Origin: Lytechinus pictus
Lineage: Eukaryota
DNA length: 64,000 nucleotides
Assembly: GCF_037042905.1 (NCBI RefSeq)
Contig: NC_087247.1
Location: 12,648,001-12,712,000, forward strand
Reading direction: 5' to 3'
The notes beneath the pieces were generated by a model, which was given only the letters and a program-made list of their open reading frames with translations, had not been told where the DNA came from and searched no databases. Positions 13,801 through 58,168 of this stretch are shown in pieces (position 1 is the first letter of the stretch; each line of letters opens with the position of its first letter). The position numbers and the translations under genes were made by a program.

Positions 13801-16800
13801 CAATATCAATGTTCTTTATTCACCGAGTTCAATCTCTAAGGCTTATCATAAATCAAAATAAAAAAATTTAAAGATGAGTTCCAAGGAGTCAACGTAAGGA
13901 AACCATTATGTGAAAGATAACCTACCAGAGTCATCCCTGAGGCTATCGACGTAGGATTTAGCCTCTTCAATATAGCGTGGAATGGCCGGTGCCAACCTAC
14001 TATTCCCTTTCCAGTACCTAACCCCATCAGAGAATGTGATGATGCTGAAGTAATCTCTGGGGTTGAGACGGTCTAACATGGTCTTGAGAGCTTCTTTGGT
14101 CTGGCTCAGTTTGGTTCCGTACATGGAAGCACTGACATCGATGACGAACACTATCTGCTTCTTCAGAGCGTCCAGTTCGGATGGTGAGAAGAAGTGCACG
14201 AAGTGGTTGTCTTGTACCTGCGTTCAGAGATTCAACCAAGCATTATATCTGATTAAATTCTCCTCGTTTAATGAAAGATCATGATCGACCATGTTTCCTA
14301 TCCAGTATCCACCGACTAGAAAAACAACGATTATGAAACACCATGACAATTGAGGGATAACTTAAAAAGTTGGGCGACTGGACGCCACGACATTTGAAAC
14401 GTAAAAAAGGAGATAACCACAGATAAAAGAGATATAGACCCACGTAGATCTGCATTAATGTGGTGTAGAATTTTTGCTGCAGACCTTATTACATATTTGA
14501 GGGGTCAGTATTGGTTTTAAAAAGAGCATATGCCAATGATGTTTGCTATAAAAAAAAAAAAAAAACCCACACATTTTAAGGCCATAGAACAATATGTATG
14601 GTAGGCCTACATGTATGCCTGTTTCTTGGGTAACATGCATCGATTTTCGCTTATTTGGATCGACCTTTTATCAAATCACAATAATCAACAATGATGGCAT
14701 CTGACCTCCCTTATAGTTTAGGTATTGTATTCTTATATTCTGTATTTCACAGAAAGCAAGGGAACTTCAGAGAAGCAGATACGGAAGATTCGTAATCACC
14801 TGTAGATGACTTCCGTCCGGAGTACGCTCGACATCGTACTTGATCACGATATCCCCATCCAGGCCATTCTCATTGTAGTACGACTGATCATAGACCGTCG
14901 GGTAGAACCTGAACTGGGACCTTGTATCTGAATCCTGCGTAATCCCCGTGGCAAGGTTCAGGGTGTGTCTTCCAGTCCGCGTGTCACCGTCATACTCTGC
15001 GGTCATCTCGCGGATCCTCTGGGGCTCGGTCACCTGTACGTCGATGCCCAGATCTTCTACGAGCTGGGGTAGTAAATGAGAGACAATAAAACCCTTTCTA
15101 GGTATAGGCAGTATGGATCAATAAGTACAATTAAAGCATGAACTTTGTGGTAATGAAGGTTCCATGACATTTCCCCATTCGACAGTTGCTTCTACCGAAA
15201 GTCCACACATTAAGCCAAACATATAAACCCAAACTTCAAACCTTACCTCAACCTTAATCTTAAGGATTCATTAAAGATTCATTCTCGTGTAGATAACGTC
15301 ATCGTGGACAAAAATGAAGTTGAGAAGGAACCAGAGGACCAGTGGCGATGTCAAAATATTTTTATGGAGAGGGATGGCAGGATGACCTAATGATGACATC
15401 ATATCTTTATAAATTGGATTACAGGGGTATTATCATGATATAGAGGTATCCTTTTCAATACTTGAAAACTCATAGAGGAACGGTCACTGCTCCTGGAGAG
15501 GAAAATATAATACCAAAGGTAAAGGTATGAAGGTGTATCATTGGAGGATCAGAATCAGTACATACCTGATGAGGTGCGATGTTGATTCGTTGCTCATACT
15601 GCCCTCTGACTCGTTTCAAGAGTTCATCGTAAGTCAAGACGAAGGTTGCCCGTCCATTGGGTCGAACCTCTGGCAACTGCATCACAAACGCATCTTTCGT
15701 CGGGTCCCTGAGGGATAGAAAATGGAATGAGATGGGAATGGTTACTTCATGGCATGAAGGATATATTCTGAAAATGGTGTGCAAGTGACGAAACTAGAGC
15801 TTTAAGAGCTTTGCATTCTGTCATATCTGACATTCTAATGAATAACTTATGTATATAGAATACAATTCTTACAGTTTCAGCTACAATAGCGTCTGAAGAT
15901 GAGGGATAATCTTAAAATAGCTTGAAATGATGTATTGTATAGTTCAATGATCATCGATTGTTAAATGTTTGATAGCACCTTTAACACACCGTGGTTGTAA
16001 CAATAGTTTGATTGAACGTTTCATGAAAGAACTTGTCGGACGTTTTACCCGACAGTTATCATAGTAATAATGCTTCTCAACCAATCAATATCAAGGAAAA
16101 TCGTCAGATCTGAAAACTTAGCAGACAAAAATGTTGATGAAACACTCCCCTGGTTTTCAACTTGGAATAGGTTAATACGGTGAGATTTCAGACTTCCTTC
16201 TTTCCATCACAGAAATCTACACCCAAATCAAGATTCCCATTGATGGACATTGTTTTACCTTCTTGCAAGCACAGCCAGGACCTGACCGCTGCTACTGGTA
16301 GCAAAGACATCACGCCAACGGCCATCACGGATATTCTGAACAACACCGCGGTAACGCTCTCCATCAATGTCACTGAAAATGAAAATACAATATCATTTAA
16401 TCTACAGAAACCTCATAGCTCTACCTAAGTGATCCTTGGATCCCAGCAGATATCGTGAGCGCAAGACTCCAATGATCACATTGTTATTGCTAATATTATA
16501 CAATTATTGCTCTGTGCAGTTCATATGATTGAAAAATATAGAAATGCGATCCTTATCTAAACAAATACAGTGTGAAACGACATTTGGTCCAATCTTTATA
16601 ACTCTGATGACGATGACTTAAAGTATATTTAATGCAATGTAAAAAATGACTTCATAATATTCCTCATCACCTAACTTACACATAAAAGTCAGATACGTAG
16701 GCACCACTTGGTATTTGTTGGCTGAACTCGATAGGATGGTCTTCATAGTCAACGTTCTCATACTCGGCCTCGACTTTTGTCCGTGCATACCGTTCAGTTG

Positions 16801-19800
16801 TGTCTGACTCCACGTTATATCTCCTTAAAACTATTGGATTGTCCTGAAATGAGGGGTGAATTCATGTGTAGGTCATCAGTAATAAATTGAAGAATATATT
16901 TAAACAAAATCGACGATTTTTTAAAGACATGTAACTTAACACAACTTCCGTATGTAAGCAAATTATTACTTAAAACTCTTTGATATTATAAAAGAGTTTT
17001 AATTGATAATGTGCTTACATACGGAGATTTATATATATTTTTATATATTTCATAGTTTTCATCTTAAAACTTACGACTCGGCGGACTGCAGGGGCATTGG
17101 TCGTAGTTCTTGGTTGTGGTCTCGTTCTTGGCGCTTCTGTTGTAGTAGACCTGGGTCTAGGTGGCCAAGTTCTTGGTGGTGGTCTCGTTCTTGGCGCTTC
17201 TGTTGTAGTATACCTGGGTCTAGGTGGCCAAGTTATTGGTGGCCATGTTCTTGGTGGGGGTCTTGTTCTTGGCGCTTCTGTTGTAGTTGGCCTAGTTCTG
17301 GGTGGCCAAGTCCTTGGTGGCCACGTTCTTGGTGGTGGTCTTGTTCTTGGTGCTTCTGTTGTAGTTGGCCTGGTTCGCGGTGGCCAAGTCCTCGGCGGTG
17401 GCCTTGTTCTTGGTGCTTCTGTTGTAGTTGGCCTGGTTCGCGGTGGCAAAGTCCTTGGTGGCCATGTTCTTGGTGCTTCTGTTGTAGTTGGCCTGGTTCG
17501 CGGTGGCCAAGTCCTCGGCGGTGGCCTTGTTCTTGGTGCTTCCGTTGTGGTCGGCCTTGGTGGCCAAGTCCTCGGAGGCCATGTTCTCGGTGGCCAAGTC
17601 CTTGGTGGGTTAGTTGGGGGCGGTTCTGTTGTAGTTGGAGGTGGCCTTGTACGAGGTCTGGTTGGTGGAGGCTCTACAGGACGAGGGTCGCAATTCGCTC
17701 CACCTATACCTGCCGCCATCTCTCCGACCCTCCCGAACGACGGTCCAACCATAGACCATTCGAAGCCGCTAGGTCTAGACTCGACAATCCTTGTCACAGA
17801 CACCCAATCATCGCCCTCTTCACCAGGATCCGCTACGCGGGAAAGAACCATGCTCATCAAAGGTGTCAGTAAGTTATAACGACGTGATATGACACGGGCA
17901 CGCTCGGCTATGGAGCGTCGCTCCACTGCGTCATCCGCTAGACGGTACCTATTGAACAACTCTCGCAATGTCATGAATGCGTACGTCCTCTCAACGAAGT
18001 TCGAAGGGATGGTATGGTCGTTGACTGTTTGAGGATTCTGGAAAAAAAGTAAGTAAAGGGTACCATATCAAAAGGAAGATTTATCCAGTTATGGCATCCA
18101 ACCAATTTCTGAATATACCCACCTACAATGGAAGATACTATTATATCGAGTAGCGCTAACAATACTGATATTTTAAATTTCCACTGTAAATGTAACTTTA
18201 ACATCAAATTTTATATTCAAACATTTATTTACAAAACATTTGGCAAGTGTGAAAGCAAACTATACTTGGAATCACGATTAAAGTCATGTTGGATCTCCAT
18301 TATAGGAACGTTGTTTACTTAATCATTTATCAGTCAATTAATCATGACGAACTTGGTGTAACTACTTACCTGCATAAGCGAAAGTCTTGCATTCTTTTAG
18401 AGAGACAAAAAAAAAAGAAAGAAAATATTGAAAGGGTTGATAAGTACTCTTGTTTATGGTAAAATCAATTTACTAGACAGAATGATTCTTGACTTATTAT
18501 TTACTGTATGAATATCATAGTATATTAAACATATTATTCATAGGTGCCTTTTACCAGGTTTAAAGTCGTTCCTGATTTCAGAATCATGAGAGTGAAACGA
18601 TTAACGTAAAAGTACAGTTGATTATGAACTACATACTAAGGAATATATGTTCTACGACACCGATGAAGATAGTAGCTCAAGTAGTAAACAGGGAAGGGGT
18701 GTTGGAGTTTGATCCTACACTCCTTTTTAATATTATTTTTATGGATCCCGAGTTGGGGGTTTACCCCCCCCCCCCAAGATCCGCCACTGAGTACAAATTG
18801 TGTGTGTTTGACCGAGCTGGGTCCCGTAACACAAATATTAGCTATTGATCGTATGCTTGATTTTTACGATTGATTGTACATCATAGTCAATGCAATCAAT
18901 CGTAGAAAAATGTTCTACGATCATTGCTGAGCTTTGTTTTTTGGGCCCGTGGTTTGGCTTTTGAGGTGCAATTTCTTGGCTTACCCTCAAATTGACATCC
19001 TCTTTAAAGGTGGTGACGCCATCAGCACCAACAGCGGTAATCTTGATCGGCAAATATCGGAGATCATCGGAACTGAGTATTCCCGAGACGGCGAGTTCGG
19101 AACCGTTGAAATAGTTCGGAAAGGTTGTGGCTGAAGTGCTTCCGGGTCGCACGGCATTGTTGAGGTATTCCACAACAATGTTGAAGAGCAGGGGCGTGGC
19201 AACCTCGCTGTAGACGCCTGCAGAAATATGACGGTAGTATCAATATGCTATGTTAAAAATGATGTCATGAAAGGATCATGTTTTTTTGTTTGTTGATATA
19301 TATATACTCAAATCGAATTAATGAGTGAACTTTTGAAATGAAGTTAAAAAATTGTGTCATGGAAAGATCATGTTCTTTTGTATGTTAATATAAACTCAAA
19401 TTGAATTAATAATCAAAGTTTTGAAATGAAGTATTGCGAAAATGCTAATTAGGTTTTGGGTTATGTGGCAGGTGATAATCGGGAGTATGACATGGTTAAA
19501 CCAGGAGAAAATTTGTTTTTTTGTATGAACTAGACAACTTTTACAAAGGATACTATTCTCTCTCATCTTTTCCTCCGTTCCTACAAAACTTAGACCTACA
19601 ATTGGATAACGTTTCCATTCTTTCCAAATTATGTCTACCGACCTCAAACGAAACCAAGGAGACTTATCTAGACGTACCATACGGGAACTGTCAATCTTTC
19701 TCAAACAATTAGTACCATCAAGCAAAACTTTCAAGATCATCATATAAATGCAACTTTTCATAATTTTAATCATGCGAATTCAGGCATATTCTATCACCTG

Positions 19801-22800
19801 TTCTCAATCACATACCACGTAATTGTCCGGGAGCAGACGAGTCTTCATAAATCCTCCTAGCCATACCACGGTTCTGAAGGGCTAGTCGCACCAAGAAATT
19901 ATAGTTCACCAGCTTGCCGAACCCAAGGGTCACTATAGAACACCGCTGGTCATTGGCGTTACGGACGTTACGTTCGATAGCGGAGAGACTCGTCACACCA
20001 ACGGATGGTTTCCCGTCCGTTAGCACGAATAGGATGCATACCATTGGGTTGGAAATGGTCGAGTTCATGGAGCCAGTGGTTTCAAGGAGACTGAGACCCT
20101 CTAACAGGGCATCGTTCAGGTTGGTCCCTATGGAAGGCAACACAATAGAATGTAGCAGCCACAATCTTTACTCAAAGGCTTCACTAGATCGCCTGTCTTT
20201 ACGATATTTTAATCAAGGTTGAACTACCGATGCAATAATACACATTCTGACATTGGTGACATAATGACCAATAGCAATTCCGTCAAAAGTTTATGTACAT
20301 TTTTTTGAAATATCAGTAATAATATGTATACTCCTTCACATGATGTTCCGCCAAGTTTCTATTGAAGCAAACAGGAAATCCAAAAGCGTACTGCAGATTG
20401 GTCTTACATTGTTTACAAACACCATTTCATCAGTCAGTTACAAAGGCTACTTGTGAATAGGCCTCGTATGTATATATGCGTTTCAAAATGTGCAAGATAC
20501 CACCGCCCTTCCCCCCTCTAAGTTCCTATCTTTATGTCATAATCAACAAACGTAGAGAGCGTCAGCATTTCAAAAGTAGTGACGCCCTTTACGGTCGTTG
20601 TACATATTATTGACTTACCTCTTTGAATGTCTAGTTCGCGAATGAAGTGCTTGGCATGGTTGATGTTGTATGGGTTCACATCAACCATTCGTCCGCGGTT
20701 CCAATCATCGTACACGTAATCGGAAAAGGGCAAGATATTGAAATGATCGCGATCGTTCATCTCGTCGAGAATGGTATACATCGCCTCTTTGGTCTGTTTG
20801 ATCTTATTCCCGTACATGGAAGCACTGAAATCTAGGACGAACACCACTCTTTTGTTCACAGCTCCAAAGTTGGCAGGTGCGAAACGATGGATGAAGTTGG
20901 TTCCCGAGGTCTAATATTACACGTTAAGAGAATAATAAAGACTCTTGATCACTACAGGCTTTTACGAATCATCCATTTTTACTATATTTGGATTTAATGT
21001 TTCTAAGTAGGATTAGGCCCACATTGTCAAGATAATTGGCCAGAACTATAGGTATTAGTATTAATCAATATCAATAATTATGTCTATCGAATCGAATGAG
21101 ATAATCGATGCAGATCTCAACCCAATACTGTATACAATCGTTTGGTACAATAAAGAAAGGTATCCTATCATGTGATGCTTGCTCTGCCGAAAATTGTTCC
21201 TTCGTAACTAATATATCAGACATGTAAGCTGGAACTTAAATAAAGGAGTGAATAAACAAAGATTACTAAATCAATTATGACCACTCCAATCTCAAACAAA
21301 TCCTAACTTAGACGCAAGATACCAGATCAAAATTGTTAAATAACAACATAAGGAAGAGAATTGAGAATTGTCAGATGCTGGCTGGTATGCCTTGACTGCT
21401 CAGAAAATATGAATATTAAAGAGAAAACGAAAGAACCGACGGCTTTGCGTCCTGTCACTCTGAAAGGACACATCTCCTCACCTGCACCTCCCCCACACCT
21501 GGAGGATGAGCGATGTCATACCGGATGATGAAATCTCCGTAGATACCAGGAATATTGTAACGGTTCATGTAGCCATCCTGCTGCTGTTGGGTTGGGCGGT
21601 AGTCGATCTGACATTGCGTCGTCCCGGTTCCCGATGTCCGTGTGTTTCTGAGATGACCACCGAGGTCGTAGACCTTACCTCTGTCATTACTGGCAGCTTC
21701 AAGAAATAATAAATCGTCATGATATCTATTATCATGATTATGGTGAAATGCGCGAACCATACAAATTATAGAAACATCCTTGTAAAGGATTAGAAATGCA
21801 GACATAAGCCGTACCTTTTGAGAAAAAAAAAACGTAGCGAAAGAGCATTTGACTTTATGAATACAAACAAATCTAAGTCTATCTCTAAGTATAATCAGAA
21901 TAAAAATTTTTGCTTTATACATATGCCCATCTTGTGTGTAATTTATATCCAGGATTTCCACCTGAAAGTTCCTGAAATAAATGAATAACTGGACAAAAAA
22001 TAGCATATTGTTCTTGATGTCCTCAAAATTAACTGTCACGGACTTGGGTCATTCTCTTTTCTCATTCTATTCAATTTACTGTAAGCGAAAAGGACAAAAT
22101 AGATTTTGTTATTTAAAGTGACGTAAATGCAATCAAATGGCGTCTTGCCTATCATATCTCTCAGCATCATGAATATACATTTCTAATCTACGTAAGATGT
22201 GAATATATCAGCAACTCATAATCAGATGATCTGGGCCCAAGTCTAGAAAGATTCATGATTGATCTCTTTGAATGCATGATTAGGCTTATAACATGCATAA
22301 TGCAAGCGCGAGACCATCATACAAGGGTTCTCTAAAATAAGATACCAAGATTGGCAAGATAATATGAAATATTTTGGGTACATCTGCCATTGATTTGATC
22401 AATGAGCTTTCTCATTTGTTGTTTAAAAACTCAGTGACATGTAGAGTACACTTCTCTTTGATTGAAAAACATAACGTCGATCGCTTTCCATCGATATAGA
22501 ATGACAAGTAGAATAATTTGATAAAACTATGGCGGGGAGTTGCTTATTCTGCCAAAGTACAGGGCGATATGGACACATCAAAAGACATCATTGATGTTTT
22601 ATTTGGGTTACCTACAGGGGGGAATTCTTATTGCATGTATTTTGTACACCATAACTGTATGTGTGGAACAACGCCATCAAGAGATATATAACACAGATAC
22701 AAGCTGAAACTTGAAACTAAAACTAAAACTAAATCTTGAAAATGAAGAGGGAAAGGTCCTTACTCGATCGGTGGAGACCTGCCATACTGTCAGTGAGCAG

Positions 22801-33082: not shown

Positions 33083-36000
33083 ATGGCAAAGTTTCGGATT
33101 GTCTTCTGGTTGGTCGTCATGGCAACGTATCTTACAATAATTTGTGCAGACGATATGGATGAAGATAAGCTCGAGAACTTTCACGACTACGGTAAGCAAG
33201 ATACCAATTTCTATTCATGGGAAATTGACTCTGAGATTTTTTGAATGGTTTCAGAACATAAACAGCATGAAAAGTAGAAGAAACAAAGTATTTTGCAAAT
33301 TTTGATATTTGTGATTGCAAAATATTTTTGAATTTTGAGAGTGAGATTGACACAATGCTGGGTACAAAAGAAATGTAATTCTATTCGAGATGGGAGGGGT
33401 GTATATTTCATTTTCCTCTTTTCATTCTTGTCTCATGTAAAAGGGTAAAGCTTTTTCATATTTGTATGTATATGTAGAGAAACATTAATAAAAGATAATA
33501 CTAATGAATCGTAAGTCTTTATTACACAGGACCACGGCGAGGATAGCATTGATTGAAGCATAATCATTAGGGAGTCATGGAGGAGTTCATTATCTACGAA
33601 GGCATTTACCTAATAGAGTTTTTAAAGAAATGTGAAGTTGCGAACCAACAATGGGCGGAGATACTGTGTGAAAGAAAATTGATTATCTTTTATCATAATA
33701 GAGGGAAGGAAATATAAAAAAGTTAGTTACAAAGGTTTCCACGAATTTCTTGATAAAATTGTATTCTCACTTCTTTTCTTGTAGGAATGAAAAATCCACA
33801 GGTGAAATGCCCCAGCAAGTGCTGGTCAAACCCTCCACCCAAGAAAACCATTTGCGCCACCAACGGCAGAACGTATATCTCGTGGTGTTACTTACGCATG
33901 AGCGCATGCGCACTTCGTCCCGTTGCTGATTGGCAGGTGGCTTACTTGGGATCTTGTGTGCACTCGTATGGGTCCGTCAGCTATACATCATCAAGTGCGT
34001 TTCAGGTTAAACATTCTTACGAGGAGGCGATTCCCCTTGGGCAACTAAAGCGTAAGCAGCAACAACAAAGACAAAGAGCTCACTTTGGAGAGGAGGAGGA
34101 GGAGGAAGAGGAAGAAGAAGAGGAAGAGGAGGAGGAGGAAGAACAAGGAGACTATTCTTCACCCGGTATGACCTTTGCATTGTTTTGCTGAAAAAAATAC
34201 TTATGATTTTTCCCCCTTTGAGAAATCATTATCAATTCGAATTTCATTCATTGCAATTATCGATCATACTCAATAACCATTTTATCCACTGTTGTAAACT
34301 TCCATAGCCTGGAAGTGGATCAGTCCTTTAAAAAAAAGCAAGAAAAGAGAAAAACAAAGCAGTTACAGTCACCCAAGGCAAAGACAGGGGACATTTCCAG
34401 TTGACCATGGGCCTTTTCACACGTGAATCTTGAATCATTATTGTAATGATTGCAATTCGTCTTTAGAATCATCGAACCTTTCACACGCTCACTCGAAAAC
34501 TGATTTGAATTCGAATTCCCGAGCGAAGGCGGTATGTGTCCTTGGTGACTTGTCAATCAAATCACTGCATCGCAAATACAAACTACGATGAGTGCATGAC
34601 AATTGTATTATCTACGGAAGTGCTTGAAAGGTCATGTAAGCTCCGCCCCCAAAAGATGTTTTGGAGTCAAGCCTTTCACACGCAAAAGTCGTAAGGTAAT
34701 TTGAGTGAAACAAAACTGGAATTTAACCTCCGGAGTAGAATTTGAATTCGTGATTGTGATTAGTGTTCGTGATTCTAATCATGTACTAGTTTGGTTATGC
34801 ACGTGCTAAATTTTAGTCATTGGCCTTATTTTTCACTGGAATCATCATTCGAATTACGATTTTTTTTTACCGTGTGAAAGGGCGGTACGTTAACTCTATC
34901 CTATCATGACAACTATCGTAATACTGTCGTAACAATTAAGCATGTTATGTAATGAAATTGACACTCGAAACCAAAGCATGCACCCACAAAATTCAAAGAA
35001 GAAAACAGCGAGAATGAAAGCAGTTTAGTTCTAACCAGAAGTAGACAGGCTTTACCGAAGTTGCACCAAATTTCAGAAAATTCCAACCGCGGACATTAGA
35101 TTGATGTGTGATCATTGAGTGTTTACTGAACATATATTAACCATTAGAAAGAAATCGAGATGTACTCTTTCACAAACCGGCCCATATACTGATGAGAATA
35201 TATATTTCATTTCAGTTGCAACGGGAGGAAGCGAATCAGAGGGGGAAGAAGCAGAATCATCACCATTTGTACCATTTAGTTTTGCAGGTAAGCTAATGTC
35301 CACAAAACATAGAGATGTATATAATTATATATATATTGACAATATAATATATTTCTATGCTTCAAAACATAATTAAAACATATATAGGAATACTGTTGGC
35401 GAACCAAACGGGTTGTATCTTCATACACTGAAGATCTGCCATTATTGCAACGCAATGCATTGCAAAATTTGATATCTTAAGATGAAAAAGCTCATAATTA
35501 TAATAACCTATTTCAACTATTTTTTTCCGGCCTGAATCAATAAGTTGTCCGTATCCCGAACTTTACAACGTTTCACAATGCCTGTTGTCTCGTGACAACA
35601 TTCTGTTGTTCTCCACGTTGTCAAGGTTAATGCGGGTGGTGAAAACGCACTGCTGTAACCTAACAATGGTTTGTAACATACTGAGTTCATACAGCCTCTA
35701 GTTGAATACTATACTAGATGCTAGATTTAGTAGTAAATGAGAATTCAAGATTCATGTATTATAATGTAGATTGGTTATCTGAAACGCTAAACATTTTACA
35801 TTCATTTACAGCCCCTGAATCTGCTGAACCAGAAGAATCAGAAGAACCGGAAGAATCTGAAGAACCTGAAGGTTCGGAACCAGCAGAATCGTCACCGATG
35901 GAACAAGCAGGTATTTCTAACAATGGTTGTATATTCCGTTGAAATGAGTCAATGAGACATTTTACAATTGTATTACACACCTTCCATGCGTTTGAAATGA

Positions 36001-39000
36001 TGAAGATAAATGTCTTGAATAACTAATGTACCCATTTGTATTCATTACAGCCTCTGAATCTGCTGAACCAGAAGAATCCGAAGAACCGGAAGAATCCGAG
36101 GAACCAGAAGGTTCGGAACCAGCAGAGTCCTCGCCTTTGGAACAAGCAGGTATTATTTCTGAAGGTTGCATATTCCATTGAAATGAATCGAGTTAACATG
36201 ATAGGCTACACTGTCTGGTGCCATACACATTTTCAAGCATTCGAAATAATGAAGATCAATGTCTTGAATGAATAATTACTTACCAATTATTTATATCCAT
36301 TTGCAGCCTCTGAATCTGCTGAACCAGAAGAATCCGAAGAACCGGAAGAATCCGAGGAACCGGAAGGCTCGGAACCAGCAGAGTCCTCGCCTTTGGAACA
36401 AGCAGGTATTATTTTTGAAGGTTGCATATTCCATTGAAATGAATCGAGTTAACATGATAGGCTACACTGTCTGGTGCCATACACATTTTCAAGCATTCGA
36501 AATAATGAAGATCAATGTCTTGAATGAATAATTACTTACCAATTATTTATATCCATTTGCAGCCTCTGAATCTGCTGAACCAGAAGAATCCGAAGAACCG
36601 GAAGAATCCGAGGAACCGGAAGGCTCGGAACCAACAGAATCCTCGCCAATGGAACAAGCAGGTAAACCGAATCTCTGAAGACTCTTTTACTGAGTTGATT
36701 TGATCTGAGTTGAGAATAAATGAATAACTGAATTTGTGTTTAGTTGGATTTCTTTTTCTCACCGAAATAATTGAAATGGGTCAAATCAGTCTCGAGACAA
36801 CCAATGACCATGTGGGTTATATCCTCCACCTTTCGCAGTGAGAAGATGTGATGATCATTATGCTACGTTTACGAATTAAATTTCGACTTGGCAGCATGAT
36901 TACTCTATCGAATGATTACTCCATCAAAATGAACAATAATAGTTCCTCTTCACATTGATATGATTAACACTTGTGAAATTTGTGTGAATTCTAAAGTAGA
37001 CTTTATTGGTGTTTGAACCACAGCTTCTGAATCTGAGGAGCCAGAAGAATCGGAAGAGCCTGAAGAATCAGAACCAGCAGAGTCATCACCAGTAGAACAA
37101 GCAGGTATGTCACAACACCACTTGAAAACATATAGTTTGATATACCCAACACTCTAAAAACAAATCAATCAAAAATGACTAGTTAATACTAATAGGGTCA
37201 GCTGGGTGCAACTGTTATTCTAGTCATATTTGACTATTTTCTAGTCGTATTTTACCAGAACATAGTTATTTCTGACTAGAATATATGTCAGAAATGTGAC
37301 AAGACATATTAGTTGCACCCAGCTGACTACTGGTCGAGTCAATTTGACTGATTTGTTCCATCAAAATGAACAATAATAGTTCCTCTTCACATTGATATGA
37401 TTAACACTTGTGAAATTTGTGTGAATTCTAAAGTAGACTTGAATGTGTTTGAACCACAGCTTTTGAATCTGAGGAGCCAGAAGAATCGGAAGAGCCTGAA
37501 GAATCAGAACCAGCAGAGTCATCACCAGTAGAACAAACAGGTATGTCACAACACCACTTAAAAAAATATAGTTTGATATACCCAACACTCTAAAAACAAA
37601 TCAATCAAAAATGACTAGTTAATACTAATAGTGTCAGCTGGGTGCAACTTTTATTCTAGTCATATTTGACTATTTTCTAGTCGTATTTTACCAGAACATA
37701 GTTATTTCTGACTAGAATAAATGTCAGAAATGTGACAAGACATATTAGTTGCACCCAGCTGACTACTGGTCTAGTCAATTTGACTGATTTGTTCCATCAA
37801 AATGAACAATAATAATTCCTCTTCACATTGATATTATTAACACTTGTGAAATTTGTGTGAATTCTAAAGTAGACTTGAATGTGTTTGAACCACAGCTTCT
37901 GAATCTGAGGAGCCAGAAGAATCGGAAGAGCCTGAAGAATCAGAACCAGCAGAGTCATCACCAGTAGAACAAGCAGGTATGTCACAACACCACTTGAAAA
38001 CATATAGTTTGATATACCCAACACTCTAAAAAACAAATAAATCAAAAATGACTAGTTAATACTAATAGGGTCAGCTGGGTGCAACTGTTATTCTAGTCAT
38101 ATTTGACTATTTTGTAATCGTATTTTACTAGAACATACTTATTTCTGACTAGAATATATGTCAGAAATGTGACAAGACATATTAGTTGCACCCAGCTGAC
38201 TACTGGTCTAGTCAATTTGACTGATTTGTTCCATCAAAATGAACAATAATAGTTCCTCTTCACATTGATATGATTAACACTTATGAAATTTGTGTGAATT
38301 CTAAAGTAGACTTGAATGTGTTTGAACCACAGCTTCTGAATCTGAGGAGCCAGAAGAATCGGAAGAGCCTGAAGAATCAGAACCAGCAGAGTCATCACCA
38401 GTAGAACAAGCAGGTATGTCACAACACCACTTGAAAACATATAGTTGATATACCCAACACTCTAAAAACAAATCAATCAAAAATGACTAGTTAATACTAA
38501 TAGGGTCAGCTGGGTGCAACTGTTATTCTAGTCATATTTGACTATTTTGTAATCGTATTTTACTAGAACATACTTATTTCTGACTAGAATATATGTCAGA
38601 AATGTGACAAGACATATTAGTTGCACCCAGCTGACTACTGGTCTAGTCAATTTGACTGATTTGTTCCATCAAAATGAACAATAATAGTTCCTCTTCACAT
38701 TGATATGATTAACACTTGTGAAATTTGTGTGAATTCTAAAGTAGACTTGAATGTGTTTGAACCACAGCTTCTGAATCTGAGGAGCCAGAAGAATCGGAAG
38801 AGCCTGAAGAATCAGAACCAGCAGAGTCATCACCAGTAGAACAAGCAGGTATGTCACAACACCACTTGAAAACATATAGTTGATATACCCAACACTCTAA
38901 AAACAAATCAATCAAAAATGACTAGTTAATACTAATAGGGTCAGCTGGGTGCAACTGTTATTCTAGTCATATTTGACTATTTTCTAATCGTATTTTACTA

Positions 39001-42000
39001 GAACATACTTATTTCTGACTAGAATATATGTCAGAAATGTGACAAGACATATTAGTTGCACCCAGCTGACTACTGGTCTAGTCAATTTGTCTGATTTGTT
39101 CCATCAAAATGAACAATAATAGTTCCTCTTCACATTGATATGATTAACACTTGTGAAATTTGTGTGAATTCTAAAGTAGACTTGAATGTGTTTGAACCAC
39201 AGCTTCTGAATCTGAGGAGCCAGAAGAATCGGAAGAGCCTGAAGAATCAGAACCAGCAGAGTCATCACCAGTAGAACAAGCAGGTATGTCACAACACCAC
39301 TTGAAAACATATAGTTGATATACCCAACACTCTAAAAACAAATCAATCAAAAATGACTAGTTAATACTAATAGGGTCAGCTGGGTGCAACTGTTATTCTA
39401 GTCATATTTGACTATTTTCTAATCGTATTTTACTAGAACATACTTATTTCTGACTAGAATATATGTCAGAAATGTGACAAGACATATTAGTTGCACCCAG
39501 CTGACTACTGGTCTAGTCAATTTGTCTGATTTGTTCCATCAAAATGAACAATAATAGTTCCTCTTCACATTGATATGATTAACACTTGTGAAATTTGTGT
39601 GAATTCTAAAGTAGACTTGAATGTGTTTGAACCACAGCTTCTGAATCTGAGGAGCCAGAAGAATCGGAAGAGCCTGAAGAATCAGAACCAGCAGAGTCAT
39701 CACCAGTAGAACAAGCAGGTATGTCACAACACCACTTGAAAACATATAGTTTGATATACCCAACACTCTAAAAACAAATCAATAAAAAAATGACTAGTTA
39801 ATACTAATAGGGTCAGCTGGGTGCAACTGTTATTCTAGTCATATTTGACTATTTTCTAATTGTTTTTTACTAGCACATAGTTATTTCTGACTAGAATATA
39901 TGACAGAAATGTGACAAGACATATTAGTTGCACCCAGCTGACTACTGGTCAAGTCAATTTGACTGATTTGTTCCATCAAAATGAACAATAATAGTTCCTC
40001 TTCACATTGATATGATTAACACTTGTGAAATTTGTGTGAATTCTAAAGTAGACTTGAATGTGTTTGAACCACAGCTTCTGAATCTGAGGAGCCAGAAGAA
40101 TCGGAAGAGCCTGAAGAATCAGAACCAGCAGAGTCATCACCAGTAGAACAAGCAGGTTTGTCACAACACCACTTGAAAACATATAGTTTGATATACCCAA
40201 CACTCTAAAAACAAATCAATCAAAAATGACTAGTTAATACTAATAGGGTCAGCTGGGTGCAACTGTTATTCTAGTCATATTTGACTATTTTCTAATCGTA
40301 TTTTACTAGAACATAGTTATTTCTATACAATCCACAGTCTCATCTATACCAAAGATGAGGGATATTTAAAGTAATGAGAATGGCAAGCTCAAAAACATAG
40401 CCAGTAACTGACGTTGACGAGATCGTCTTTATGGAATTGCCCCCCTGTCACAAGGGTGGACTCTAATAAAAGTCAGATGAACTCAATGTGTACCAAATCT
40501 CAATTTACAATTTATTTCAGTATAAAAAAATTCTAATATCAAAACATCTGTCTCTGAAGTTCAATTTGTCGAACATATGAAGTCTATAAAGAGAGAACAA
40601 ATAGTAACATTTCTAACGATAAAGACATGTCAAACTATGACTCTGATTCACCGGTTCACAATAAAAAGAAAACAAATGATCCTGTATTGATCGAATTTAT
40701 CATATCAAACTCTCGACCTGTCTCTAAATACAATATCCCTGAAAAGATCCTGCACTGATCTAATCAGTAATCACCAAACTTCAATGTTAAGTGTGTCACG
40801 CTTACACCAGTAATAATATCTTTCAAACGTATCAATCAATCCTTTAACTTTGTTCTATTTCACTTACAATCATAAATCTACTCAAACATTCCCATGAAAG
40901 GATCCTGTATCGACCCACCTTCATAACTTTATCATCACTTATATCTTTCAACTAATATATTTTACTGATTATATTTCAAATATTTTTAAACATCCTCAAC
41001 ATCCGAACTTGAGCGTTTCTCCAAATGTCTTTTAGCTCAAAACTATACTCCAACATCGAACAATCTTACAGATAAGGATCCAAATTCAAAATAACGCTTC
41101 TCACTATCATCAGTCAACTGTGTGGTCATCTTAATAATTGTCTGTTATCTCTGATCTCAAATAAATAAGAGTTTCTGATATTTCTCTCATGGTTATTTAC
41201 AAATTATCTGTCTGGTCGTTTTGTAGCCGAAAAACATCCTTTGAAGTCAGTACTTCGTATCATCGGTCAAAAGTAATTCGTCAATCTCCAAATCGAAAAT
41301 GTCCCAATTCTGAAAATCATCCAACTGTGGAATTTATCCCGATCTTGAAACCATCTAAAATTAAAGACAAAACCAAGAATCTCTCTACGATATATCCTGA
41401 CAATAACACCAACTGGAAGTTATTTTTGTCTATCATGTCATATTATTAATAAAAACTTGTTTGAAATTTGTGTAACTTTTTGAGTTTCAAATCACATTCA
41501 AGAATATTCATAAAGTTTGAATTATCTCTCGCATGAACTCACAAAATACATATTTCATGATACTTATAATCTTCCTCATAAATGCATATCTACTTCATAA
41601 GGCTTATAAATAAATATATAAACATTTCGACATCTCTCAAAGTTTATGTTTGTTTGTTTTTTCTTTATAAAAAATTGAAGAAATCACAAATTAACTCACT
41701 GATGGCTTCTTCAATACACTGTCAAGCTGCGATCTTATGTTTTAATAAATCTTGAATCTTAAACATTCTAAACAATCCAACCAAGGTTAACACCCGAACC
41801 CTAAAAACAATTCAAAGAGGCTCACCTAAGTGCTGACAATTCTACAGTTTACTTCTGATGAAACCACATTTCATCGTTATAATTTGTCTATTCCTCAGGC
41901 GAATCTGAATCTGAATCTCCCCAGCCATCGGAATCTGCTGGTAAGTGATTCATTATTCATTATATTAACAACGAAATCTATAGAAAGTAAAAACTAATTC

Positions 42001-44409
42001 GTTCGAAGAAAAACATTCCACCACATGGAGCTGCACATCCTTATCTTAAATATAGTTCATTCATATTTGTGGTGTGATAAGAGATAAGATGAAGAGCAAC
42101 ACAAAATGAATTCCTTAGGTTGCTGAAGGGAACTAGTACCGTACCGGGGATCAAACCAATGACACTGGAAAGTAAACACAAGTGCTGAACTCCTTTAAAT
42201 AGCGCCACGACACCCGTACTATAGACACCGACAAGTGGTGATGACGAAGCCCTGTATCAACATGGCCCAATCACAGAGGGCGGTCTTTATCTTATAAAAT
42301 ATTTATTTTGGGGTATGGTTGTCTTAAATCTAACAAATAGTCAGTTTTTGTTTCATGCCTAAAGTGATTGCTTGTATTAAGTCTCAAAGACCATAAGTCA
42401 ATTTCGAAATCTCTTTCCCTCCTCCCAAGAAATGACCACGAGTAGTATCATTTGTCTACGTCACCATAACAAAAAAATTCGTAACGTTCACAACGTCTTT
42501 TTTTTATATTCCGGATGGAAATGACAATAAATTCACGTCGACAGCTGTATCATGATACTACTGCCAAGATGCGGTGTTGATGAATTTTGGTAGATCTGCC
42601 ACGAGGTTTTGTAGTTCCTAATATAGAGTTCAACCATATATCAAATACCCTTTTATTTTGTTTCCTTAGAACCTTCTGAAGAAGAAGAAGAGGAAGATGA
42701 CGATGATGACGAGGATGATGAGGATGACGAGGAAAATGAGTCATCGTTCAGCGAAAGCGTAGGTCCGCATACAAAAAAGCCAGGTAGAGATTATTCATGC
42801 TGTGCTTAGGCGAAAGAGAAATGAAATGAAAAAATGACGTGATATTAATGTTTTGATTAATAAGAAATAAAATGGAGTAATAGGGCCTATTGATATTGTC
42901 TTGTTTTTATTTATAGTAGAGAGCAACCCGAGAGAGTATTGAGTCATCAATTAAACATGAAAGTTTTAGTTTGGTCGGTCAGTTTGGCCATAAATTGAAT
43001 ATATTAGAATATGCCTGAAGCCAGCATACCTTAATTTGATTTGATTTGATTTAGTAATTTCCGTTTCACAATTGTACATAATATGATAAACATAACATAA
43101 CAAGGTATAACCTTTATACAAATACAAAAAAAATCCTATTTGAAATGGTCTCCAAACTATATTCAGAAGGGCAAATGTCTCTGAAAGTGTCATAAAAACG
43201 AATAAAATTATTTCATTAAACAATCAATTTTTTGTCTTCGTCTTCGTTGTTTTACAGTCCCCCATAATCGCACGCCATCTACCACTCCCGCGAAGACCAC
43301 TACTATCACCACTGCCACCCCGACCACCGTAGCCGTCCAATCCACCACACCCCGTCTTGTTGCCACCACCCAGGAAGGTTGCCAGGTCTTCTGTCCACTC
43401 TCCGGAACGAAGGTGTGTACCACAGCGGGTGTCTTCGATAGCGAGTGCCTCTTCAACTTCTTCAAGTGTCTGGGTAAGATCGGCGAGGATGACGTGATAC
43501 TTTTCGACGGTGAATGCCCGACGACCCCAGCTCCACCGAAGATCAAGACACCACTGAAGCCGGATTTGATCACGAAGGCCCCTGTCCTACCAACGACGGT
43601 AAGATCACGGTCAACGTTGCTGTACACTGAATACGGTCCGGGTCGCGCTGTACAATGATGCATAGAAGATGGTGGAATTTTTTTCTTTTCATTCTCATGC
43701 AAAGTCACTATTCACTCCAATCATGCACCATATAGCCAAAAAGTAGGTAAAATGTGCAATATTGGGATCATACTGGCACATTTGTTTTGGTTTTGGACTA
43801 GGTGAACCTACTAGATTCGGTTTGGCGAGGCTTTCATTAAAGTTCTTTACATTTCTCGAGATCAGTTATTCAATTTTATATTCCGACAACAACTAATTAC
43901 CCTTGTGGAATTGGGGACGAATGATTCTAATGATGATGCTAACAAGAGTGATTATTTTTCAGAAACACAGAGTACTTCATACAATTTTAATATTGAAAGG
44001 AATTGACATTCATAGCAAGTTTCCAATCTTTCTTTTTAGACAGCAATTGTTTTCAGATACCAAATTGTAAAAGCCCAGAAAGTTCCCAACGTCACCACTG
44101 ATCATAATTATGTATTTCACATCTTTCAAATCTAACCTTTCCTATCAACAGACAAAAGGACGATGTCCCGGATCATGTCCCATGATAAATGACCCCGTCT
44201 GTGCGACCTACACAGCTCTCATCTCTTTCTTCTCGACTCCCCAACCTACCCCCAGCCTCGTCACCTACACCAATGAGTGTGTGTTCCTTCTGCTTCAGTG
44301 TCAAGGCAAGATCAGTCCAGATGACATCATCCTGTACCAGGGAATGTGTCTGGCGCCCCCTACGTTACCCGATGTCGATCTCGCTTACCGAGGAACTGCC
44401 GGACCTTGA
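33083..44409 (+). CDS. Secreted, highly acidic Ser/Glu/Pro-repeat protein with three Kazal-type domains; 19 coding exons, ~786 aa
   Basis: Exons: 33083-33191, 33785-34165, 35216-35287, 35812-35910, 36051-36149, 36307-36405, 36563-36661, 37024-37104, 37460-37540, 37896-37976, 38333-38413, 38768-38848, 39203-39283, 39638-39718, 40075-40155, 41899-41940, 42670-42783, 43258-43598, 44152-44409. All GT-AG; total 2361 nt ending in TGA. Signal peptide MAKFRIVFWLVVMATYLTIICA. Six-Cys Kazal domains: CPSKC...ICATNGRTYISWC...C...GSC; CQVFCPLSGTKVCTTAGVFDSEC...C...GEC; CPGSCPMINDPVC...TYTNEC...C...GMC. Confidence 0.85.
34409..34883. mobile_element. PIF/Harbinger-like MITE in intron 2 of gene 2
   Basis: Terminal inverted repeats GCCTTTTCACACG / CGTGTGAAAGGGC. 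The superfamily is inferred from the terminal motif only. Confidence 0.55.
35790..36665 (+). repeat. Tandem array of four 99-bp acidic exons with their introns (periods 239, 256, 256 bp)
   Basis: Each exon encodes A(P/S)ESAEPEESEEPEESEEPEGSEP(A/T)ESSP(M/L)EQA. Introns 36150-36306 and 36406-36562 are nearly identical. Confidence 0.92.
36921..40324 (+). repeat. Tandem array of eight ~436-bp exon+intron units (last one truncated), each with an 81-bp acidic exon
   Basis: Units start CCATCAAAATGAACAATAAT. Exon-to-exon periods are 436, 436, 437, 435, 435, 435, 437. The exon encodes ASESEEPEESEEPEESEPAESSPVEQA (copy 2 has AFE... and ...EQT). Confidence 0.96.
37150..37357. mobile_element. MITE-like fold-back element in the intron of each 436-bp unit (first copy given)
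   Basis: Begins CACTCTAAAAA. Perfect 17-bp inverted repeat GTCAGCTGGGTGCAACT / AGTTGCACCCAGCTGAC, extended imperfectly by AACAAATCAATCAAAAATGACTAG / AGTCAATTTGACTGATTTGTT. The right terminus is missing at the unit junction. Confidence 0.65.
42085..42216 (-). mobile_element. Degenerate tRNA-derived SINE
   Basis: Minus strand GTGTCGTGGCGC...GGTTTGATCCCCGG (B-box-like), followed by the SINE-body-like CCCTTCAGCAA...TTGCTCT. Confidence 0.45.
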
Positions 44410-46304
44410 AGACAACTAGACACTATAATGGTCCTCACCGAGATGTACAAATAATTGGTCTTTCAATCGTTGGTATAACTACCGCCAATCACCAGTGACT
44501 TTCTACCTTCTTTGTTATGTTCTGTTTTTTTATGTGCACGCAACACCTCTAGTATCATGATCGAACAGACCAAGAAAACTGTCGCTTTATGAATTCATCG
44601 ACAGTTTTCAAGACTTCGAGTACCAACAATCATGACAATGGAAGTTGTGACACTCTTGGCTACACATAGCTTGACTACACTTTTGAACCATGGATATACA
44701 GCGGTATACCTAGTGAATACAAGAATCTGCTTTTAGATGAATTGACAAGAGACACATTGGAAAAGAATAAAAAAATTATTGGTAAAAAACATGACGGAAG
44801 ATGAATGGGTGTTCCTAGCGTTGATCGTAAAGTTAGGCATAAATTTACGACGAACCACGTTGGTATGAAGTGCTAAATGGTGCGTCAATTTGCTTTATAC
44901 ATTAGGTAAATGTGATTGTCTTTCTCAACGTTCATCCTAAAATGGCATTTACTTTTTTCGACACTCTTTTGAAGTGCAAGCAGATCTCCTAAATATCAGT
45001 TGCCATTGTCGCAAAGATCGTTACTTAATATGAATAAGTCACATCAACGAAACCGAATCAAACCGATGTGATGGTCTGCCATTCGATATCATGTAATAGC
45101 TTTGATCGGTATGGATTCGTTTTCGTTGGTGTGGCGTTTTGATTGACCATTGGGGCTGGCCCCCGTGATTGTAACTCATATGCAATACAAAAAACCCAAC
45201 AAATTGACAAGATGAGGCTATTTCCTTATGATGCAAAAAAAAAATCACATTTTGTTTTCCAATATCGTTCGTGTTTTCATGTTCATCACGGTATATACAC
45301 GAACTGATCCGTGCGTGTAGTGAGTATATAGATAATTCACAGAGGATATACATTTTAGTATAAATATAATGTATATGCTAATTGAAAATGTGATCATTTC
45401 AAGTTATTTATTGATTGCAGCATATTTTGAAAATAGTTTGTAAATTACAATATAAATGTTTTTAAATATATGAGAGACTTCCTCGAAACGACATGTAAAA
45501 AAATACATGAATAAAAAAAATGTATAGCTAAAATACTTTCTTGATGAAACTTAGTGTCTTTATTTGTATTGACTGGTGAAAATTTTATTTCATTTCTAAT
45601 ATTTAGAAATTTCAAGAACCACTGTTGATTCAATTAGAACATCAAGAAAAAGTCGAACAAGTTAAATTTCTTTACATGACATAAGTGAACAGAAAAGTGC
45701 ATGGGAAGAAATTGCATGTTTATCACATTGGGGACCAAAAACACACAAATAATTTAGATATAAATACATCAGAAATAGAAATAATGGAAGTACTAGAGGC
45801 TCTGTCTAAGCTATGATTGCCAAAAGATAGTCATACAAGGTTAGTCATGTCACACCTCTCCTCACCACGAACCAACCAACTGCCATGTTGACAGCCCCCC
45901 CCCCCCACCCGAGCGCTAGTCAATATCTGACTGCACTGACAACATGGAATGCATACTAATCAACTATTCTCTGTGCTTGACAATTGAGGAAAGTCCGGTT
46001 TAAAAAAATGCATCTATATATTAAAACACGAGCCACATAACGGTTTTGATATTGACCCGGAGGGGGAGCTGAGCAGAAGGGGGAGGGGGCAGCTGACCAT
46101 TTTGTACATTACAATAAATAAGAAATGTTTACGTTTTTGTACACGTTTAATGAAACAAGGGGGAGGGCGGATGCCCCCCCCCCCGGCTCCGCGGCCCATG
46201 AAGTCGACTATCATGTGAACAAAGCAGAAGTTTCGAAAGGCCCTAAAACACATCCTACTTCTATATCATTCTTAATACAGTAATGCCTCCTGTATCATTC
46301 CTAA

Positions 46305-54870: not shown

Positions 54871-57680
54871 GTAAGCAATGCTATTTTGAGTTTAATGAGT
54901 TTTTGGTGTCGACTGTCAAACGGACTGCAATAATAGTGTAACTTCGGCGTTCATTCATGTCATTAATAGGATTCCAGTTTTATTTTCTGATTCTTCGGTT
55001 TCTTTCCCTTTTCTACGTCGCATCTTTATGTTTATTTGAGTTGAATGTGTTTGTTTATGAGTTACTTTTGATCGTCCAATAGTGTTTTATTGTATTCATT
55101 TATCATTATATTCATAAAATGTACGTAAACAAAATCTTCCTACCTCTTCAGTCAGGCAAATGCTAATAGCTAAAATGATTAGTTTTAATTATTCGACTAA
55201 CCCTCAACTACTACAGACATGATAGACCTGAGATCATGAGGGTACTCAAATTTTCACTCTTATTTCTCCTTTCCGTTGCTAAGCATCAATCACTCATAAA
55301 CTATTTTTAAAGAATGGAATCGGAAATATACCGTCACACACGCCTTTTCTTTTGCTCCTAGGATAACAATCTCCCATGCTAGTTAATACCTGTTATACCG
55401 TCGCACCTTGCGCAAAGGGGGCTTGGCAAGACATCACGAGGTAATTACAGTTGGCAAACTGTAAACCTGTCCCAAACCTGTTAATAAAAACAATATCATT
55501 GGCAACACGAAAGAGGATTGTACATGAAGGGGGAACTTATATAGGAAATGCAATTCGATTTATTTCCATGTATGTACATGTAGGTCAGTGATTGTCAAAA
55601 ATGGAGTCATATTTCGGCCTATCTCATTTTTCCATCGTTGCTCACACGGATGTATTTCAGTGAGGGGTAGGTGCCGGTGTGGATTTTGAGGGGAGAGAAC
55701 TGACTTTCGTTTCATGAAATATATCGAATTGCAATGACTTCCTCTATCGGCTGTCAGACGGTCAAGTTTTGCGTGATTATTAATTGCCGTCAAGATCCCA
55801 GATTTAGTCCGTTACTTTTAGACGCGTAGCTTGAAAGAACAATGAAAGCCGGTAAGGTGGTTTTAAAAAAATGAGGATCCTGTTGGCGGGAAAGAAATAC
55901 ATATATTTTGTCTTAATAGCACATACAAGCTCATTGAAATATGATAATTGCAGATACTTTATGTAATGTAAACACTGTTATGAGAAAGGTTCGTCGCACA
56001 CAGCAGTTGCACTGGCGATGCCAGATTTCACCTCATGCAAATGTCAAAGACATCTGTGGTTAAAGCCATCACCTTTTTAGTTAGGGTCTGAGGTTTTACT
56101 GAGAATTGTCATATTGATGTTCGGATAGGATATCGTCAGCCTATACAAGTGTGTGGGAAAGGAATAGGAACATAAGCATTTGGGATTACTATATAGAACA
56201 GAACATATGACAGAGGTACCAAATTGTCGACAACCTCAACAAATGTTTCATTTTCTTGTTAACCCATACTGCCTACTGGAACTACATGTAGGTAATCCCT
56301 GTACAAAGTCTTGTCTTTTCGTTAATGCCCACAATCATTATATTGATTATTATAAGGGAAGTCTAAGGGAATCTGAAAAATTACTAGTCAACGGTAATAA
56401 ATGTGTAACATTTTGCTATTTCTTTTTTTCATTACTGCTCGAAAAACGATATCAGCACGGAATCATTTCTTTCAGCTTCGTGATTTAGCCAGTCCGATCC
56501 TTTAAAGTCACGATAATCTGAAGAGACTACCGTACCGTTAAGGAAATGTTCAAGACGGAGGACATGTATTATGTTGGCTTCTCCATGAAAAGCTTAATCA
56601 GTTACTTCCTCGTGTTAATGATAATTATGCGACCGTCATATCAACAAAATGGACTCCAAACTGACCGATAGTATGTCATTGTAAATAACGCAATCGATTT
56701 AGTGGATCATGAGTCGGTTTGGTTACGTGTGACTGTGTGGTATTAAAAATCTGAACAATCAGCATTACACGAAATTTGATTCGAATGAAAATATTAATTC
56801 GTTTTCTTTATTTCAGAAGTTTCAACACGTCGTATGTCTGTTTGATGTATAATGGCAAGTTGGTGACAGTTTTGTTCACCGCGACCACAATCATATTAAA
56901 GGGAGAAGAGAAATAAGAACAGAAAATGAGAAGAATGAAACTAGATTGTGGAGAGAGAGAGAGGGGGGGGGGGTGGTAAAGCTGATTGAAATAAATATTT
57001 GATTTTTTTTTTCACAAAATATGATACGTGATATATATATACATGTACATGATGTACATATACATGTTTAAAAACATTAACCTTAACAATGCACAATCCA
57101 TATTGTGGCTGTTTGTTTCGAATAAAAGTTTGAATATAATGGAGTACAGTATTTCATTAATTCGGTTTAATAATCATTACTCACATTGGCTCCTGATGAC
57201 GCGTGCCATCAGTGCGGAAGACATTTATTTAAGAGTGACGTAAGCCTAAATCCGGGACTAATTTCACTTCAAATTGATTACAGAGGACAAAACGAAATTG
57301 TGCCCGGCTTGATGCATGTCAGACTAAACTGGATAATGTTGATGGGAACAGTTTTCCATGACGTGCTACTGAATCTACTGTATCCTGAACATAGCTAATC
57401 GTTTGGAGGTTGACGAAAACAGTTAACTAGTTCATCGCACAAAATACAGAATAGTATTAAAATAAATGGAAGGCTAATTTAAACTGCAATTAACATAATC
57501 GGGATATAAGTAATTTGGTCAGTTAATATTCTTATTGAGGGGGGCGTAGGGGCTTCTGCTAAAGTATGTTAAGCGGTTAATGTTCTTTGCCATTTTCACT
57601 TGACTAATTATTGATTCAATTACTTTATTTTAAATGCCCATGTATTTGTTCGTGGTTTTTATTTTATTTCATTTTTTACA

Positions 57681-57905
57681 NNNNNNNNNNNNNNNNNNNN
57701 NNNNNNNNNNNNNNNNNNNNNNNNNNNNNNNNNNNNNNNNNNNNNNNNNNNNNNNNNNNNNNNNNNNNNNNNNNNNNNNNNNNNNNNNNNNNNNNNNNNN
57801 NNNNNNNNNNNNNNNNNNNNNNNNNNNNNNNNNNNNNNNNNNNNNNNNNNNNNNNNNNNNNNNNNNNNNNNNNNNNNNNNNNNNNNNNNNNNNNNNNNNN
57901 NNNNN
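57681..57905. other. Assembly gap (N run)
   Basis: 225 N characters. Confidence 1.
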
Positions 57906-58168
57906 CAACAGCTTTGGCAACTCTTTTATTTAAATATTGTAAAGATATTGTATTGTAACATGTTGTACATGTATAAATTTACACATTTGTATACTTTCTC
58001 CCATACCTGTACTGTATCAAAGCAATAGCTTTGATCCAGCTGAAGCATGGCGGCTTGTCATTGTTCGAAACCCACCTTCACCCGACAAAGGAAATTATAA
58101 TTGGTATAGTGTCGAAAATCTGTCTATCTGACGGTCAATCGGATCGGGGTCGTCCTAGCCACTAACCC

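Follow-up and report, generated by a model that had tools for sequence, protein, structure and literature searches.

The skeleton and tooth of sea urchins rank among the main models for the biological control of calcite formation, yet the strongly acidic components of their matrix have been catalogued poorly. In vertebrates, secreted matricellular proteins that combine an acidic low-complexity region and a follistatin/Kazal-type module include SPARCL1/hevin, SPARC and testican. Here, we analyzed a 64,000-nucleotide stretch of the Lytechinus pictus genome (NCBI RefSeq assembly GCF_037042905.1, contig NC_087247.1, positions 12,648,001 to 12,712,000 of the forward strand; hereafter the window) and characterized a plus-strand gene at 33083-44409. 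This locus is an intact, transcribed echinoid gene. Judging from its sequence, we would describe the product as a secreted polyanionic protein that carries three Kazal domains, is probably phosphorylated and O-glycosylated, and is conserved among echinoids. Taken as a whole, the best explanation appears to be a secreted polyanionic three-Kazal binder/inhibitor, to which we assign a probability of about 0.5.

Among the closest described systems are the tooth matrix proteins of Strongylocentrotus purpuratus. Five low-complexity proteins, four of them with Kazal domains, were reported in this matrix (Mann et al., 2008; PMC2614417), which bears out what an earlier sequence-only reading of the window had noted about such proteins. 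Like the protein described here, the tooth Kazal proteins (Glean3:17589, 17590/22278 and 17588) consist of a signal peptide and one or more Kazal domains followed by long acidic low-complexity blocks, and some of them are phosphorylated. However, they lack the C-terminal Kazal pair, and their Ala/Pro-rich neutral or basic blocks alternate with acidic Gly-rich (Gly/Asp) blocks where our protein has Glu/Ser/Pro repeats. This AP-type block pattern was not found in the acidic region of our protein, in which Gly amounts to 2% and no basic block is present. Phosphodontin (Glean3:18919; PMC2830187) has a layout like that of our protein, in which a signal peptide is followed by numerous short repeats of the acidic Ser/Glu/Pro/Gly type and then by an Asp-rich run; it is likewise disordered, and it shows that Glu-rich, and not only Asp-rich, phosphoproteins occur in the urchin tooth. 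On the other hand, its repeats are 11-12-amino-acid EISSGEGEQPK units that end in Lys and so are within reach of trypsin, Kazal domains are absent from it, and homology between the two proteins is not apparent. Agrin-like Kazal proteins have been found in other echinoderm skeletal proteomes (PMC4336488; PMC5460417).

An analogy with SPARCL1 had also been drawn for this locus. It holds for the pairing of an acidic region with a Kazal-type module but is architectural only: a search of the three structured exons against Pfam matched Kazal models and no SPARC calcium-binding domain (SPARC_Ca_bdg), the other exons being of low complexity. Unlike SPARCL1, SPARC and testican, the protein has no EF-hand EC domain, and only a C-x3-C precedes the Kazal core, where the EGF-like follistatin sub-domain would sit. 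The SPARC structure BM-40 matched our family profile at E=0.9 only.

The assembled exon model contains 19 exons with GT-AG boundaries at all introns, and its open frame of 2361 nt (786 amino acids) extends from an ATG at 33083 to a TGA at 44407-44409. The encoded parts are, in order, a signal-like N-terminus, Kazal 1, a run of 18 Glu, Glu/Ser/Pro repeats, EEEEEEDDDDDEDDEDDEE, a Thr-rich linker, Kazal 2 and Kazal 3. Every element listed for this locus by the sequence-only reading was present at the positions that it gave. The RNA check spanned 40060-44600 (4541 letters) and used two contig runs and two raw RNA runs. Coverage was confined to exons, with the GT..AG joints 40155>41899, 41940>42670, 42783>43258 and 43598>44152 present in the contigs of X1 and X5. 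An additional joint that 'goes back 81' was observed in the X1 and X5 contigs as well as in 8 raw reads of X21, as is bound to result when identical 81-nt exons are spliced in tandem. The last exon is unspliced (contig gap-free across 44151-44600), and the 3' untranslated region runs past 44600. Stranded raw reads were oriented as expected for a plus-strand mRNA. In eight small runs, a share of ~0.4-0.5 of the words of 43258-44409 was present, which matches the exon share of this segment (599/1152 nt). For exons 1-8, splicing rests on canonical sites, frame and conservation in Diadema, the reads covering 40060-44600 only.

The central part of the protein is a disordered polyanionic domain of about 400-420 amino acids in which every repeat has a phase-1 exon of its own: the repeat exons are phase 1-1 throughout, and each of them codes for a single Glu/Ser/Pro repeat. 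Within a 402-amino-acid acidic region, Glu makes up 42% of residues, followed by Ser (22%), Pro (15%), Ala (10%) and Gly (2%). For the mature protein, we calculated an isoelectric point of about 4, and its net charge is about -195. The features of a Fam20C substrate, a signal-like N-terminus and S-x-E sites (30 in the acidic region and 31 overall), are present at the level of sequence, and Fam20-domain loci were found at three places in this genome. In sea urchin, fam20C is a direct target of Alx1 (PMC7719703), and the Sp-Fam20c_1 protein was detected in the tooth matrix (PMC2830187). Residues 135-584 (450 amino acids) contain neither Lys nor Arg; a 451-amino-acid tryptic peptide is therefore expected, and standard proteomics would see the Kazal flanks only. 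Sixteen predicted tryptic peptides of 7-38 amino acids in the mature protein all fall outside this stretch. A bikunin-like glycosaminoglycan-attachment reading, which had been prompted by an ITIH-like neighboring gene, found no support: acidic-Ser-Gly sites were absent and only Gly-Ser was found.

The repeat exons are arranged in tandem. The 99-nt exons lie within a 256-bp unit (3.5 copies, 88%; Tandem Repeats Finder, TRF) and are 89-98% identical, each coding for A(S/P)ESAEPEESEEPEESEEPEGSEP(A/T)ESSP(M/L)EQA. The 81-nt exons, each coding for ASESEEPEESEEPEESEPAESSPVEQA, belong to a 435-bp exon-plus-intron unit (7.8 copies, 98%; TRF). Among the 435-bp units, exons are 99.4% and introns 97.7% identical, and amplification or homogenization has therefore been very recent. 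The length of the acidic domain may be tuned by unequal crossing-over between these exon-plus-intron units. Every 354-356-nt intron of the 435-bp unit carries a fold-back element, which resembles a miniature inverted-repeat transposable element in its nested inverted repeats (22-nt arms 91% complementary, 30-nt arms 80%). The word depth in X1 contigs reaches ~1330 at this element, which suggests that it is repeated elsewhere in the genome.

Kazal 1 is a member of the Pfam Kazal_2 family (E=2.2e-8; 34.5 bits versus a cut-off of 22.8) with the Cys spacing C-x3-C-x10-C-x10-C-x6-C-x15-C. We read Kazal 2 and Kazal 3 as probable divergent Kazal domains. The former has the spacing C-x3-C-x7-C-x9-C-x6-C-x15-C and Leu at the P1 position, and the latter has a 16-residue insertion between Cys3 and Cys4 and Met at P1. 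All six Cys are invariant across seven aligned domains (three from this protein, two from a downstream paralogue and two from Diadema), and the C-x3-C ... C-x6-C-x15-C spacing is that of the follistatin/agrin subtype. When a joint profile was compared with PDB, agrin (5.3e-25), follistatin (9.2e-12) and small Kazal inhibitors such as SPI-1, PEC-60 and rhodniin were matched; when the profile was restricted to the four C-terminal-type domains, it still gave mostly Kazal inhibitors (best E=7.9e-5). The C2-C3 loop of Kazal 2 and of Kazal 3 has the canonical length of 7 residues, which together with Leu/Met at P1 suggests chymotrypsin- or elastase-like targets. The protein thus has the six-Cys framework in common with agrin/follistatin-type modules and classical Kazal inhibitors, but differs from them in its polyanionic repeat context and in the conserved 16-17-residue insertion after Cys3 of Kazal 3. 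An intron within the Kazal 3 exon was considered as the source of this insertion and ruled out, as the RNA contig is unspliced and the insertion is kept in Diadema. Kazal 3 occurs as a single copy in the 812-Mb assembly, where the gene is located at C3:12.68 Mb.

A HMMER search with Kazal 1 gave 352 matches, and among the matches inspected the sole orthologue was XP_072180785.1 of Diadema setosum ('uncharacterized protein'); the others inspected looked like generic, mostly multi-Kazal proteins with roughly 30-45% identity. Word-indexed protein searches with the Diadema Kazal 1 region, Diadema 420-569 and exon 2 also found only the Diadema protein, although such searches are blind outside their length windows and say little about the S. 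purpuratus or Lytechinus annotations. Lytechinus and Diadema represent two echinoid orders. In the orthologue, exon 1 aligns at 61% identity, keeps the signal peptide and DDMDEDKxENxHDxG and has the same end point; Kazal 1 is 81% identical over the columns kept for the tree (clade support 100/99); the poly-Glu run, the Asp/Glu run and the exon with VPHN plus the Thr-rich linker are shared; and Kazal 3 is 60% identical, with both the insertion and the DVDLAYR tail kept. The repeat exons have the common unit ASESE...SEEPEESEEPE...S(S/A)PxEQ(A/G)G, also written SESxEPEESE...SSPxEQ(A/G)G. In contrast to the Lytechinus gene, the orthologue lacks Kazal 2, and its repeat exons are less numerous and more diverse, with an 81-amino-acid multi-repeat exon among them. 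Conservation of the repeat unit despite homogenization within species speaks for constraint on the motif itself, and not only on its composition. In the RefSeq model XP_072180785.1 (locus L002:10001-44024, OZ188187.1), several repeat exons are in the wrong frame (NRKNPKNPKK...), and the model has an unrelated 5' extension that starts ~21 kb upstream of the true signal-peptide exon (L002:31498-31581).

The coordinates of the gene and of neighboring features are given in Table 1. Downstream of the gene, a small paralogue extends past the end of the window and comprises a signal peptide, a short acidic run and two Kazal domains joined by a Thr/Pro linker; like the product of the large gene, it ends in ...TAGP. 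We placed 61 Kazal domains in a maximum-likelihood tree, which has little power with 47 columns kept. In this tree, the C-terminal Kazal domain of the paralogue pairs with Kazal 2 of the large gene (99/71), Kazal 3 pairs with Kazal 3 of Diadema (99/86), and all four C-terminal-type domains fall in one clade (100/98). Upstream, the head-to-head neighbor of the Kazal gene is ITIH-like (ITI_HC_C, E=4.9e-12; VWA, E=8.7e-9); no such neighbor was found within about 21 kb upstream at the Diadema locus, the far end of which carries a STRIP-like (N1221/DUF3402) gene. A group of four Kazal domains is present at C3:13.230-13.234 Mb, ~520 kb downstream of the window.

Table 1. Positions of the exons of the Lytechinus pictus Kazal gene and of nearby features (window positions, except those marked L002 or L003).
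Feature	Position	Strand	Description
Exon 1	33083..33191	+	Start codon; signal-peptide-like hydrophobic N-terminus MAKFRIVFWLVVMATYLTIICA, then acidic motif DDMDEDKLENFHDYG; ends in phase 1
Exon 2	33785..34165	+	Kazal 1 (33808-33957), Ser/Gln-rich linker, 18-Glu run (34089-34143; GAG repeat)
Exon 3	35216..35287	+	72 nt, VATGGSESEGEEAESSPFVPFSFA, phase 1-1; canonical AG/GT sites, in frame
Four 99-nt exons	35812-35910, 36051-36149, 36307-36405, 36563-36661	+	Within the 256-bp tandem unit
Eight 81-nt exons	starts 37024, 37460, 37896, 38333, 38768, 39203, 39638, 40075	+	Array 36920..40324
Intron fold-back element	first 37159-37357, repeated up to 40324		In every intron of the 435-bp unit
Exon 16	41899..41940	+	42 nt, GESESESPQPSESA; joints on both sides in X1 and X5 contigs
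Exon 17	42670..42783	+	Asp/Glu run EPSEEEEEEDDDDDEDDEDDEENESSFSESVGPHTKKP; model and RNA joints; counterpart kept in Diadema (L002:41801-41956)
Exon 18	43258..43598	+	Thr/Pro-rich mucin-like linker, Kazal 2 (43380-43517), Pro-rich linker; RNA joints
Exon 19	44152..44409	+	Kazal 3 (44164-44349), tail PTLxDVDLAYR...GP, stop TGA 44407-44409
ITIH-like gene	3906-22036	-	Head-to-head with the Kazal gene
Run of N	57680-57930		Assembly gap or masked stretch
Small paralogue	from about 61368, past the window end (L003:1368-4090)	+	Short acidic run DDSEEGSEDDSSEE; first Kazal 62504-62659, second Kazal L003:3929-4066

As a secreted polyanionic three-Kazal binder/inhibitor, the protein might work as follows. 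It would be secreted, with its Thr/Pro-rich linker O-glycosylated, and a Fam20C-type kinase in the Golgi may phosphorylate some of its roughly 30 S-x-E sites. Once outside the cell, the Glu/phospho-Ser domain could bind Ca2+ or cationic/mineral surfaces with low affinity and high capacity, and the Kazal modules could dock onto serine proteases or inhibit them. Several observations weigh against this explanation. Both C-terminal domains fall under the Pfam cut-off (Kazal 2, E about 0.1, 13.1-13.3 bits; Kazal 3, Kazal_2 E=5e-4, 20.6 bits), and their AlphaFold2 models have predicted local distance difference test (pLDDT) values of 62.6 (Kazal 2, single sequence) and 42.0 (Kazal 3, two sequences), too low for a fold search. 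With its 10-residue C2-C3 loop and Ser at P1, Kazal 1 may be non-inhibitory, and Kazal modules of the follistatin/agrin type are often so. The acidic region had been described as dense in S-x-E motifs; the 30 sites are there, but they are not enriched over composition (36.4±4.1 in 2000 shuffles of the acidic region), and their density is a consequence of the 42% Glu content. In addition, expression was low in the two raw RNA runs, at 7-9 reads per ~8 million.

One possible but tentative refinement of the binder/inhibitor explanation, rather than an alternative that excludes it, is that the protein is a matrix phosphoprotein of the calcite skeleton, tooth or spicule, occluded in or lining the mineral and controlling CaCO3 nucleation or growth, as an analogue of phosphodontin or dentin phosphophoryn with built-in inhibitors. 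Its polyanionic, disordered, Ser-rich and secreted nature, the design of one repeat per exon and the Asp-rich run after the repeats are consistent with such a role, as are the like layout of phosphodontin (PMC2830187) and the occurrence of Kazal-bearing low-complexity and agrin-like Kazal proteins in echinoderm matrices (PMC2614417; PMC4336488; PMC5460417). The composition, however, is unlike that of the known tooth Kazal proteins (Glu/Ser/Pro versus Ala/Pro with Gly/Asp), and Glu far exceeds Asp. About 7 Mb separate this gene from the presumed counterpart cluster of the tooth Kazal genes (C3:5.2-5.5 Mb). When Kazal 1 was compared with the genome, four of its five best non-self matches fell in the Kazal-rich region C3:5.3-5.5 Mb, with a weak BLAST-level affinity (E=5e-4). 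Yet at least 84 Kazal_2 matches are present in the genome, about 27 of them within the 330-kb region C3:5.21-5.54 Mb; that is, ~1/3 of the matches sit there anyway, so the four of five are marginal. In the 61-domain, 47-column tree, Kazal 1 formed no supported clade with domains of this cluster, and its nearest neighbor is a domain on another contig (90/71).

The sequence-only reading had proposed a check against tooth and skeletal data. The papers and supplements that we searched contained no peptide and no description that matched the protein. The motif strings of the protein, which are species-specific, were absent from the tooth-paper supplements; a Kazal-plus-Glu-rich entry was absent from the phosphoproteome tables; a literature search for the string EEPEESEEPE found no paper containing it; and searches for literature on Kazal with Glu-rich, acidic or Lytechinus gave nothing specific. 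Palindromic sites of the Alx1 type (TAATNNNATTA) also occurred at chance level (5 in the window versus 4.55 expected). If the protein is in the matrix, its 450 consecutive residues without Lys or Arg would explain why tryptic proteomes missed it. We consider unlikely the stronger proposal that this polyanionic phosphoprotein with inhibitor modules is a substantial component of the calcite matrix missed by every published tryptic proteome, and a functional counterpart of dentin phosphophoryn whose length is tuned by amplification of exon units.

Somewhat more doubtful than a role in mineral matrix as such is that the protein inhibits serine proteases, in soluble form or associated with mucus or matrix, in a compartment without mineral (for example coelomic fluid, gut, epidermal secretion or the extracellular matrix of the larva). 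The acidic repeats and the Thr-rich linker would then provide a hydrated, protease-resistant spacer or a mucin-like solubilizing domain instead of binding mineral. The canonical loop length and hydrophobic P1 residue of Kazal 2 and Kazal 3 fit this function, as do the mucin-like linker and the head-to-head ITIH-like gene (VWA plus ITI_HC_C). The downstream paralogue, a plain small secreted two-Kazal protein with a short acidic stretch, suggests an inhibitor ancestry. Nevertheless, the repeat motif, poly-Glu run and Asp/Glu run are kept in Diadema, whereas a mere spacer would more likely drift, and the net charge, about -195, would be extreme in a spacer. It is highly improbable that we are dealing with an assembly artefact or a decaying gene, in which 435-bp units were mis-assembled or collapsed and the frame is fortuitous: the assembled copy number may indeed be wrong with units that are 98% identical, but 19/19 exons keep the frame and have canonical splice sites, transcription is seen both in spliced RNA contigs and in stranded reads, and the Diadema orthologue has the same architecture.

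Within the preferred explanation of a polyanionic three-Kazal binder/inhibitor, an extracellular matrix or secretion other than calcifying tissue has about an even chance of being the site of action; calcifying tissue is a possible but less favored site, and anything else is rather unlikely. On present evidence, a role in mineral matrix is no more likely than an extracellular one as an inhibitor or matrix component away from mineral. Acidic low-complexity secreted proteins with Kazal modules are a kind already known, and this gene is a plausible, unproven candidate for a matrix component of that kind.

The gene offers a concrete and conserved matrix candidate that is annotated only as 'uncharacterized' in one species. 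Its Lys/Arg-free stretch provides a technical reason why standard proteomics would overlook the protein. Gene knockouts have been made in Lytechinus pictus. If the protein is active elsewhere than in the mineral matrix, the gene would still be a clean example of a domain that was lengthened by very recent exon-plus-intron duplication around an ancient conserved motif.

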